64,000 bases of DNA from Camelus ferus. Taxonomy: Eukaryota. Below the pieces are notes generated by a model, which was given only the letters and a program-made list of their open reading frames with translations, was not told the DNA's origin and ran no database searches. Positions 17,720-21,500 of the stretch are shown here, piece by piece. How positions within the stretch are numbered: position 1 is the first letter of the stretch; every line of letters starts with the position of its first letter. The stretch spans positions 26,474,001 through 26,538,000 of the forward strand of contig NC_045717.1 of NCBI RefSeq assembly GCF_009834535.1, written 5' to 3'. A program made the position numbers and the translations under genes.

Positions 17720-18504
17720 CTAGCAGGCCAGGTGTTTCAGCCGCCAGCAGTGCTGCAGGTAGTGGAGCCCAGGTCTGTGGTTCCAGCTGCAGCTGGCCTC
17801 CATGGTGGACTCGGAGGAGTACTCCAGGGAGGACTCAGATTGGCAGGAGGCAGGCAGCTCGGGCACTGAGGTGCTGCTGGTGGGCAGTGCTAGGGGCTGC
17901 CTGCTTGGCTTGGAGGCCTTGGGGACTGAGTCCCCTGGCCCATCGGGGGTCTCGTTGGGGGGCTGTGTGGGGATGGTGGTGCCACTGGGAAACTGCACGA
18001 GGGGGACCCCCTGGCTGAAGGAGGTGCTGGGATGCTGCCTGGAGCCTGAGGACCTGTGGGCCATCTGGGAAGGGCCTGAGGAAGTGGTGGACAGTTGGGC
18101 GCGCTGCTGGCCACGGGTCTGAGTCTGGCCAGAGGCCCAGGGCTGGCCGGGGGTCTGAGTCTGGCCGGAGGCCCGGGGCTGGCCGGGGGTCTGAATCTGG
18201 CTGGGGGCCTGGGGCTGGCCAGGGGCCTGGGGCTGGCCAGAGAAGTTGGCTCGAGACCGAAGCCCACCCTGGACCTTGCCAGGCAGGTGGGAGCCACTGA
18301 CAGAGCCAGTGGCTGGGGAGTGAGGCTGGGACTGGCTCAGGCTGGCAGAGGTCCTGGCGGCTGCCTTGCTCGGAGACAAGGGGCTGGTGGAAGACTCTGC
18401 TGGGGACTCAGAGGAAGCCACAGAAGACTTGGGGTGCGATGTGTCCTCCAGCTTACCGGCTGGCAGGTCTTTGCCGGGGCTGGACAGGGACTTCACTTGA
18501 CTTT
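17720..18504 (-). CDS. REEP6: Putative alternative terminal coding segment of REEP6 (Ser/Pro/Gln-rich, about 225-260 aa, ending HCWRLKHLAC*)
   Basis: Stop-free frame across the apparent 3' UTR. It is reachable in phase 1 through CAG acceptors opening at 18504 or 18399 and contains a frame-preserving 18-bp tandem repeat. Splicing is not demonstrated. Confidence 0.45.
18105..18240 (-). repeat. 18-bp unit tandem repeat (about 7 copies) encoding GQPQAP/GQTQTP-type hexapeptides
   Basis: CTGGCC recurs every 18 bp; translation GQPQAP GQPQAP SQIQTP GQPRAS GQTQTP GQPWAS GQTQTR. Confidence 0.85.
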
Positions 18505-21500
18505 CTGAAGTCGAGTCACGCTTGCTTGGGCTGCAGAGAGAGGGCCCGGGGGTGAGGTAGGTCTGGCTGTGCCCAGGGGCCCAAGGGCTGTGCTCAGCTG
18601 CAGAGAGTGGGATGGAGGCTGCTGGGGGCCAGTGTGGGGCCCCCCTGGCGGGGAGAGAGTCAGGTGCAGGCACGCACACTCACGCTCACGCACACGGGCA
18701 CACACGTGCGTGCCCTACGTCCTGGGGGTGGGTCTTACGTACAGTCGGCTCTGAGAGTGGTGAGGGGCTCACGGCCACAGCCGCCGGGGTGACGAGGGCC
18801 CGGCTGCGGGCCAGGGTCTGCAGGACTGGTTCCCGAGAGCGTAGGAGAGAGAGGCAGACAGTGAGGGGGTGGGGAGTGCCCGACGGAGGCGGCCGAGATG
18901 CCAGGTAAAGGCCAGTTAGAGTTAGGAGGAGTCAAGGTGATGGGGGCCGGGGAGCCAGAGGCCAGACAGACATACAGAGACTGGACAGACAGACACCCCT
19001 TGCCCTGGGAGCACACACCGTCCCGAGTTATTCCGGCCGCCACGTCCAGGGCCCGCCCGCTGAGGTCGCTCACGATGCTGTCCACGGCCTCGTGGTGCTT
19101 TAGAAACAGTGGACGTATGATGCGATGATACAGCCTGTGAGCCCCGTTCCAGGGGCTGGGAGCCATGCAGAACAACAGGAAGGCGCACTGCGGGAACCGG
19201 CAGGAGTCACACTCGGCCTGCTCTGTGCCCCTGGGGGCAGGGGTTGAGCCTCCTCCATCAGACACCGGGTTGGGGTGGACCTGGACCGCCCCCGTCAGAT
19301 ACCCATGTGATGGGCCTGGTCTCCTCCATCAGACACCCCTTGGATGGACCCATCAGACCCCCTGCCTGGCAGAGCCTGTCTCCCCAGGGAAGGGGCTGAG
19401 TCTCCCCATTACACTCTGGGGGCAGTAGGGTGGGGCCCACTTAGAACCCTGGTCCCCTGGTCGCCTCCTGCAAGCTCTGGGGCCTGTGTGGAGGAGCGNN
19501 NNNNNNNNNNNNNNNNNNNNNNNNNNNNNNNNNNNNNNNNNNNNNNNNNNNNNNNNNNNNNNNNNNNNNNNNNNNNNNNNNNNNNNNNNNNNNNNNNNNN
19601 NNNNNNNNNNNNNNNNNNNNNNNNNNNNNNNNNNNNNNNNNNNNNNNNNNNNNNNNNNNNNNNNNNNNNNTGCGGCAGGGTCAGGAGCTGCCTGGGGCCC
19701 TGGCCACCCCCCATGCTCCCCCCGCCAAGCTGCCAGCGGGCACTCACGAAGCATATGCGGGGTACACAAAGCCGATGAGATTGCACAGCAGAGATGCCCC
19801 GTAGCCGAAAAGAAGATACAGGCTTAGCAGAGTGGCGGCTCCTGCAGAGAGGGGCATGGGTAGGGATCCCTGCACGTGCTGAGCTGGACCACAGAGCCCT
19901 CTTAGCCTGACCCGGAAAACCTGCCACCCCCACGCCTCCCCAAAGCCACAGCAGCCCCTTCAGGACGAGTTACTGCCCTGCAGCACCTGGGCCATCCCCA
20001 TCACAGCCCTGAACCCCGAGTCTTGTGGCTAATACGTCAGTCTCCCCCACGAGACTGGGAGTTCTCCAAGGGCACATGGGCACCTCGGGACTGGTCTGTA
20101 CCAGGGAGCTGCCCAATGTTTGTTGAATGTATGTGTGACCTCTGCAATTAGAAACACCTCGCTCCGGGTCCTACAGGATGGGCAGAGCACGGGAAACTAG
20201 AGTTTGAATAGACCACTCTGTCGTTAAGACTTGACTCCTGGAGAGCAGAGAAAGGCAACAGAGGTTTTAACTTTTAATCCTGGGTCTGTCCCTCTGGCCA
20301 CTGCTGATACTGGAGCCAGGTCATTCTCTCTCAGGAGCTGTCCTGGGCACTGCATCTGGGCTGTGGAGCAGCATCCCGATGCCAGGAGCCCCCCGGTCAT
20401 GACGGCCACAGATGTTCCAGACACAACCCCAGTGTCCTGCGGGCAGCGCGGCCCCGTTTGCGAGCCCTTTTCTTAGTGGGAGGGAGCAAAGCGCCATCTG
20501 GAGAGTCCCCCAGACTGAGGAGAGCTCTCACCCCACCACGTGACGCCTGCTTGGAGCCCCAGGTTCCCCATCTGTCAGTGGGGTGGTAGCGGCCCTGCCC
20601 CCCAGGGCTGCAGTGGGGTTAGCGAGACTCAGCAGAGGACCCCTCCCTACACTTTTGTGAGTGCCCTCTGCTGGCCCAAACACACTCCCAGCAGTCTGAG
20701 GTCTCAGAGCGGAACAGTGAGGGGAGCCCAGGAGCGTCAGCCGTTCTAAAATGATAATGGTTGCTGCTGCATTTAAGTGCTTCTTGTGTGCAGGGCTCTG
20801 TTCCTCCCTGCTCTATCTCATCCAACAGCTAGGAGAAATGTAAGCTGGGGGGATGGGGCTTGCCCAGGGTCACTCAGAGAGACGCTGTGGCTTCTGGGAG
20901 CATTTACAGCCTCTTCTCCGCCCCCCACAACCAGGCTGTCATTTGCACAGAGAGATAGAGGCCACTAGTGGACCAAATGGCAGAATCACCTTCACGCTCT
21001 CCACCTGCATTAGTCTTTATCCTTGGGGTCTGGGGTCAGGAGAGGGAGGGGGGATCCCCAGCTGGCCCTGAGAGGCCTGCTCACTGCCTTCCCTGGGATT
21101 CCTCCTCAGTGAGCTGGGAGCTAGGGGAGTTGGCCATCTTGGCACGGGGCAGGTGGGGCCCAAGGGTTCCTACATCTAGGAGAGGGGTTGGTGGAATGGC
21201 ACCCTTTCCCTGGAAATTGCTGATTGGGGTGGAGCAGCTCCCCCAGGGCACCCTTCCCCTCAATCCCTATTCCTGCAGCCTCAGCAAAGAGAGGATAACC
21301 TTGGACATGGAGGGGGGGCACAGCCCCAGGGATCAGCAACAGATGGGCCAGGGAGGGGGTAGAAGCTCAGGGCAGGCAGCAGGGGCAGCCTCCCATGTAG
21401 CCCCGGCTTCTCTCCATCTCAGTTTCCTCCCTGTGACCCCCATCCTCCCCAGAGGCTCCTCCCAACCAGGCCCCTCCCCAGTGCTCTATGACCTAAATTC

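Follow-up and report, generated by a model that had tools for sequence, protein, structure and literature searches.

A probable second coding frame overprinted on the REEP6 mRNA of placental mammals, traced from the Camelus ferus locus

REEP6 among described overlapping frames

This work concerns REEP6 in a 64,000-nucleotide (nt) stretch of the Camelus ferus genome (assembly GCF_009834535.1, contig NC_045717.1, positions 26,474,001 to 26,538,000; this whole stretch is referred to here as the window, and its own numbering is used throughout). The element under study is a long open reading frame (ORF) in the last exon of this minus-strand gene, which we interpret as part of a second coding frame on the REEP6 mRNA. 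The nearest known arrangements are found at POLG, CDKN2A, and GNAS. POLGARF, which is restricted to placental mammals, starts at a CUG; it lies within the POLG coding region, and its overlapping frame begins upstream of the main ORF. The REEP6 frame resembles it as a long overlapping frame with an upstream start on the same mRNA, confined to placental mammals and predicted to give a disordered, Arg-rich product, but differs in that it starts at an AUG, covers the whole host coding sequence (CDS), and continues for about 257 codons beyond it. At CDKN2A, ARF has its own first exon and promoter. Both the INK4a/ARF pair and the XLas/ALEX pair of GNAS share with the REEP6 arrangement the reading of shared exons in different frames and a newer product that is basic or proline-rich and disordered. 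The resemblance to the long C-terminal tails of REEP1-4 is superficial: these are also REEP proteins with a long hydrophilic tail, whereas the tail at REEP6 lies in another frame, is mostly predicted without the hairpin domain, and has no homology to any Pfam family.

A REEP6 overprint has been described once before. Neme and Tautz (BMC Genomics 14:117, 2013; PMC3616865) listed mouse Reep6 among 13 overprinted genes (Ensembl ENSMUSP00000100994) on the basis of Ensembl annotation and phylostratigraphy, and dated the overprint to Boreoeutheria; their study does not report selection tests, the anatomy of the tail, or expression data. Beyond that study, no description of a REEP6 overprint was found in the literature searched; neither the 2007 ARFome survey (PMC1868773) nor a 2026 dual-coding preprint mentions REEP6 in its main text. 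By its published description, the mouse case involves the same gene and a start codon in exon 1 from which a second frame is read across the ancestral one. The camel frame is the orthologue of this already described but functionally unexplored overprint, which is known but barely characterised. It differs from the published account in that Afrotheria and Xenarthra are also represented and in that the frame shows frame-preserving selection. What is new here is the range across placental mammals, selection that preserves the frame in the tail and 5' extension, the avoidance of stops in the overlap, the conserved predicted C-terminal helix, and the conserved placement of the poly(A) signal.

The alternative frame and its conservation

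A second, placental-specific coding frame probably overprints the REEP6 mRNA, and the ORF in the last exon would be its 3', nonoverlapping half. In its canonical form the last exon begins at 18530, directly after ...CTCTCTGCAG, and its first 38 nt (18493 to 18530) are dual coding: the REEP6 TGA lies at 18495 to 18493, and the alternative frame is open throughout. On the minus strand this frame is free of stops from 18679 to a TAG at 17722 to 17720, a distance of 319 codons from stop to stop, and comprises 269 sense codons from 18529 onward, 257 of them beyond the REEP6 stop. A previous sequence-only reading of the window had placed the canonical stop at 18493 and the end of the open frame at 17720, and both were located there. 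The nonoverlapping tail (17723 to 18492) is rich in Ser, Pro, and Gln and predicted to be disordered, and the same C-terminus, KHLAC in camel, directly precedes the stop in all seven genomes compared. A poly(A) signal, AGTAAA (17705 to 17710), follows about 9 to 10 nt past the stop, likewise as described before. The signal occupies the same place in the other genomes, as AGTAAA in camel, alpaca, blue whale, and red deer and as AATAAA in black bear, raccoon dog, and star-nosed mole; because it is kept right after the alternative stop, the ORF fills the mRNA nearly to its end.

Upstream, the alternative frame is shifted by one base relative to REEP6, its codons beginning 1 nt 5' of REEP6 codons, and it can be followed through exons 2 and 1 as far as an ATG (22920 to 22922) located 214 nt upstream of the REEP6 ATG, with G at -3 and C at +4. 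In this frame exon 1 is 329 nt long (22594 to 22922), contains the REEP6 ATG at 22708 to 22706 (GCCATGG), and ends at a GT donor at 22593 to 22592. Residues 1 to 119 of the predicted alpaca X1 protein match the window from 22922 to 22557 at 92% identity, and the tail of the same protein matches 18529 to 17723. Exon 2 (19748 to 19841; 94 nt) is open in both frames and has the same length in the raccoon dog, bear, alpaca, and mole models. Exon 3 must fall in a run of N (19499 to 19670); it measures 139 nt in these four species, and in their rebuilt mRNAs the alternative frame is open across it. With an exon of that length, exons 2 and 4 would be in register and the camel alternative protein would have 513 amino acids.

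Exon 4 (19019 to 19187; 169 nt) reads ...GRNNSGR at its end in the alternative frame, with 2 nt left over for the codon completed in the next exon, so that the tail is entered through the canonical junction from 19019 to 18530. Read in the alternative frame over normal splice sites, the camel junction peptides VLGRG/SRHSAK and NNSGR/PSKRD (slashes mark the junctions) agree with the alpaca model. Because the tail is reached by the normal exon 4-last exon junction, no new acceptor is needed. An optional retina-type cassette exon (18739 to 18825; 87 nt) ends in phase 1 and is open in both frames in camel. Judged by the sequences compared, the conserved route into the tail appears to be the cassette-skipping junction.

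Two variable features of these exons were observed in passing. In camel, alpaca, whale, and deer, the cassette exon is open, measures 87 nt, and has an identical GTAAG donor, so that the camel form is the cetartiodactyl norm; bear and raccoon dog have lost 20 nt of it, which would put the REEP6 frame out of phase, and in mole its GT donor is replaced by AT. In addition, the alpaca, bear, and mole models include a 79-nt short form of exon 4, made with an internal acceptor 90 nt downstream, which keeps both frames and would remove 30 residues of the REEP domain.

Selection was examined in the seven genomes named above (camel plus alpaca, blue whale, red deer, black bear, raccoon dog, and star-nosed mole), so that the codon tests cover Laurasiatheria only; nucleotide alignments were built frame-blind. 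Between the REEP6 stop and the alternative stop, all 35 pairwise gap runs are multiples of three, against 26 of 107 in the 800 nt downstream of the alternative stop and 22 of 58 in 480 nt of the upstream intron. Counted as distinct indel events in the seven-species alignment, the tail has 18 of 18 in multiples of three, including 13 of 13 (p=6e-7) outside a tandem repeat, with 21 of 77 downstream and 9 of 38 in the intron. Flank indel rates predict 47 to 56 frameshifting events in the tail over the seven-species tree, and none was observed. Identity falls at the alternative stop (e.g., camel-bear 0.75 before and 0.58 after), and indels of all lengths start there. The ratio of nonsynonymous to synonymous substitution rates (dN/dS, or omega), which had been proposed as a coding check, is 0.52 to 0.74 for the tail in the alternative frame, the lowest of the three frames in six of seven pairs, and 0.61 when pooled over three independent pairs (p=1.4e-4). 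The stops or frameshifts in relatives that could have undone the prediction are absent from the tail of all seven species, and the distinct C-terminal motif quoted in the sequence-only reading is the most conserved part of the tail. The alignments show a pattern of selection that keeps the frame, with no stops and in-frame indels only, and that is weak on residues and stronger on the C-terminal helix block.

A comparable pattern extends to the 5' end. The alternative ATG is kept in all seven species, in the context GGGCAATGC in six and GGGCCATGC in mole, and its distance to the REEP6 ATG is 202, 214, 220, or 238 nt, always 1 mod 3. Within this extension all indels are of 6 or 18 nt, whereas they range from 1 to 7 nt in the 300 nt upstream. 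In these species, the two start codons are separated by sequence free of ATG in every frame. In the overlap with REEP6, the alternative frame has 0 stops versus 3.1 to 4.7 expected from permutation of synonymous REEP6 codons (P between 0.004 and 0.022), and the third frame has 6 to 7. Openness is all that is preserved of the alternative frame in the overlap, and its residues are not. The camel frame displays the marks of a dual-coding mRNA, namely, a long overlap that is open beyond what codon usage predicts and no intervening AUG.

Searches of protein databases define the range of the frame. A search with the tail matched 28 proteins, with E values down to 8.5e-144 (alpaca X1); these comprise predicted REEP6 isoforms X1, X2, and X3 of alpaca, a 99%-identical Camelus ferus model, and proteins from whale, deer, bison, bear, bat, dog, moles, macaque, and tamarin. 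The sequence-only reading had mentioned long predicted REEP6 isoforms in other mammals, and predicted isoforms with this tail are indeed present in many. Most full-length models lack the REEP hairpin and read the REEP6 coding exons in a register shifted by one base. With a profile built from eight full-length proteins, 54 proteins were matched, adding elephant, dugong, tamandua, pangolin, six rodents, and Cebus; vole, hamster, and marmot are matched at E values of about 1e-128 to 1e-132 and align end to end with the camel tail. An exhaustive hidden Markov model search of 1.84 billion representatives returned 62 matches, adding elephant shrew, tree shrew, shrew, chinchilla, and mole-rat, and every match for which the organism was looked up is placental; further lookups gave cattle, yak, and sheep. 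The matches span all four placental superorders, with a shared stop and C-terminus in >45 species. No marsupial, monotreme, or other vertebrate is among the matches, which come from predicted protein sets in which absence is no proof. From this distribution, the frame looks as old as Placentalia and older than the published estimate.

Alternative explanations and points of doubt

Among the alternatives, the one that survives best, though we consider it unlikely, is that most translation of the tail comes from splice variants that begin at the REEP6 ATG and shift the frame, for example through an acceptor inside exon 4, as in alpaca X3 and the mole-rat model. The product would then carry part of the hairpin domain ahead of the tail and would not be initiated at the upstream ATG. 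The alpaca X3, alpaca X2, and Nannospalax (mole-rat) predictions are of this type, and the model would suit the position of the alternative ATG in promoter-like sequence (see below). However, the entry points vary between species, the supporting models are predictions in which CDS choice favours the longest ORF, and the model has no need for stop-free exons 1 and 2 or a frame-keeping 5' extension, yet both are seen. We regard variants of the alpaca X2/X3 type as a minor alternative way into the tail.

The sequence-only reading had instead proposed that splicing of exon 4 or the cassette exon into new acceptors, opening at 18504 or 18399, would place the tail behind the REEP hairpin and give a long-tailed REEP6 isoform. 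Its structural premises stand: exon 4 (ending at 19019) and the cassette exon (18825 to 18739) both end in phase 1, both CAG acceptors enter the alternative frame in phase 1, and the 18399 site has a pyrimidine-rich tract. Moreover, seven database models from six species do fuse the hairpin to the tail. The proposed route itself fails on comparison, as neither acceptor AG is conserved (that at 18504 is lost in blue whale, and that at 18399 is lost in black bear) and the predicted junction peptides occur in none of the retrieved proteins. The fusion models take six routes in six species, several via a retained intron, a variety that is expected if gene finders join a known domain to a long ORF. 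Stop avoidance in exons 1 to 4 and the conserved in-frame upstream ATG would also be left unexplained. Because the frame runs back past the REEP6 ATG to the ATG at 22922, the main predicted product lacks the hairpin, and a hairpin-tail protein made through these acceptors seems very improbable.

Least credible of all is a chance open frame in a GC-rich, partly repetitive 3' untranslated region (3' UTR) that is conserved as RNA or regulatory sequence and that gene predictors report because of their preference for long ORFs: the ORF is unremarkable in one genome (P between 0.03 and 0.09), its omega is near 0.6, and the database entries are all predicted, but the missing frameshifts, the stop and C-terminus shared across four superorders, and the drop in identity with any-length indels right after the alternative stop stand against it, and conservation at the RNA level would not favour indel lengths by threes.

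We return to the preferred interpretation, a second coding frame overprinted on REEP6, against which several observations weigh. In camel alone the ORF is unexceptional, being the sixth-longest open stretch in a window of 61% GC (the ORF itself has 67%); after dinucleotide shuffling, the tail frame stayed fully open in 2.8% of trials and at least one sense frame did so in 8.9%. The ORF gains significance solely through comparison across species. There, the six comparison genomes were reached via annotated alternative-frame proteins, which biases the sample toward intact frames. The number of clades and the indel rates of the flanks mean that the in-frame indel result cannot be purely an artefact of species choice, but the caveat remains. 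The persistence of a single homologous frame with a common C-terminus in >45 species is no artefact of selection. The camel window itself was not selected in this way; its visible REEP6 exons contain 0 alternative-frame stops versus 3.0 expected (P=0.02), and the tail is open at a P of about 0.03. Residue-level constraint on the tail is weak, and where the two frames overlap the pattern of substitution is that of REEP6 alone (canonical omega, 0.16 to 0.27; alternative-frame omega, >1). Camel exon 3 is masked by N, so continuity of the frame across it is assumed. At the 5' end, the first ~25 alternative codons are nearly invariant at the DNA level and lie inside a promoter-like block, and the alternative ATG may lie in the core promoter, outside most transcripts. 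Finally, no direct evidence of translation (ribosome profiling, peptides, or tagged protein) was found in the searchable literature. Short Logan/ENA contigs were considered as spliced transcripts and set aside as unspliced, since their ORFs run into the intron.

Other features of the window and its relatives were recorded. Two longer open stretches lie on the minus strand, at 21515 to 22510 (331 codons, in REEP6 intron 1) and 24619 to 25743 (374 codons), and a 1,659-codon open stretch at 37895 to 42874, also on the minus strand, is presumably a single very large coding exon. In six of six orthologous loci, the first 1.6 to 6.8 kb hold a gene for a subtilisin-type proprotein convertase (Peptidase_S8, P_proprotein) in head-to-head arrangement with REEP6 on its upstream side; synteny is thus conserved.

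Predicted product, control, and meaning

The predicted alternative protein is about 450 to 550 amino acids long and very basic, with an isoelectric point of about 11.5. Its N-terminal half, which overlaps REEP6, is 20% Arg, and its tail is 21% Ser, 13% Pro, and 10% Gln. Pfam holds no family matching the tail or four full-length alternative proteins, alpaca X1 included, and TB2/DP1/HVA22 was not detected in them; a search for neighbours in the ESM Atlas returned nothing beyond low-complexity proteins with scores of 0.60 or less. AlphaFold2, run with 32 sequences, gave a mean predicted local distance difference test (pLDDT) score of 53 and predicted disorder except for a helix at tail residues 253 to 268. 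This helix (17726 to 17773; GLHYLQHCWRLKHLA) has a pLDDT of 78 to 89 and belongs to a conserved C-terminal block (17723 to 17830) in which an acidic Ser/Thr/Glu cluster, SESSLEYSSESTxE, precedes it. E240, W249, W262, H266, and L267 are invariant in the 32 placental sequences. A zinc-binding reading of the Cys/His-rich C-terminus was dropped, since only H266 and the two Trp residues are invariant and rodents end in Tyr rather than Cys. The working part is likely a phosphorylatable acidic patch and an amphipathic binding helix at the C-terminus, carried on a flexible basic chain.

The tail also contains an 18/36-nt tandem repeat (18106 to 18242; about 137 nt) encoding GQPQAP and GQTQTPGQPRAS units. 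Camel and alpaca differ in it by 90 nt (2.5 of the 36-nt units), giving a variable-length GQ(P/T)Q...PGQPRAS protein repeat.

The sole lead on translation comes from a mouse testis phosphoproteome (bioRxiv 10.1101/2025.03.10.642497), which places REEP6, with several regulated sites, among seven proteins with both up- and downregulated phosphosites; a supplement file of the preprint does not mention Reep6. Regulated REEP6 phosphosites would fit a Ser-rich alternative product better than a small hairpin protein.

As to control, the alternative ATG sits in a promoter-like block (22847 to 23063, minus strand) with CCAAT boxes at 23063 to 23059 and 22999 to 23003, a GC box, and an inverted CCAAT at 22868 to 22864. 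The two CCAAT boxes are perfect and stand at -141 and -81 relative to this ATG; the 85 nt around and after it, which contain the GC box and the inverted CCAAT, are almost invariant in the seven species. The block resembles a core promoter for REEP6, and many transcripts may therefore begin 3' of the alternative AUG. On transcripts that include the upstream AUG, which has an adequate context and no AUG between it and the optimal REEP6 AUG, ribosomes would make the alternative protein; leaky scanning or downstream transcription starts would yield REEP6. As no AUG intervenes, leaky scanning could give both proteins from one mRNA. The position of the alternative AUG inside the block favours the choice of transcription start as the control, and the balance between the alternative protein and REEP6 would probably be set by that choice in the CCAAT-box promoter around the alternative AUG. 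The product would be an intrinsically disordered basic protein whose C-terminal acidic cluster and helix act as a binding motif.

PMC9579139 cites Arno et al. 2016 for REEP6 as a gene of retinitis pigmentosa. A further proposal, which we put forward tentatively and consider doubtful, is that the frame encodes a functional placental-specific disordered protein, switched by the choice of transcription start at its AUG, that explains part of the phenotypes of REEP6 loss, since exonic REEP6 lesions and variants assigned to the REEP6 3' UTR also alter the alternative protein.

If REEP6 does encode a second protein of roughly 500 residues that placental mammals have kept intact, every exonic REEP6 variant would have two readings, about 770 nt of annotated 3' UTR would be coding, and REEP6 knockouts would remove two proteins together. 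The two products would be genetically separable, because the alternative AUG lies in the REEP6 5' UTR and most of the tail lies in the REEP6 3' UTR. The frame would then rank among the longest host-spanning overlaps reported in mammalian genes and would offer a clean case for the origin of proteins by overprinting.

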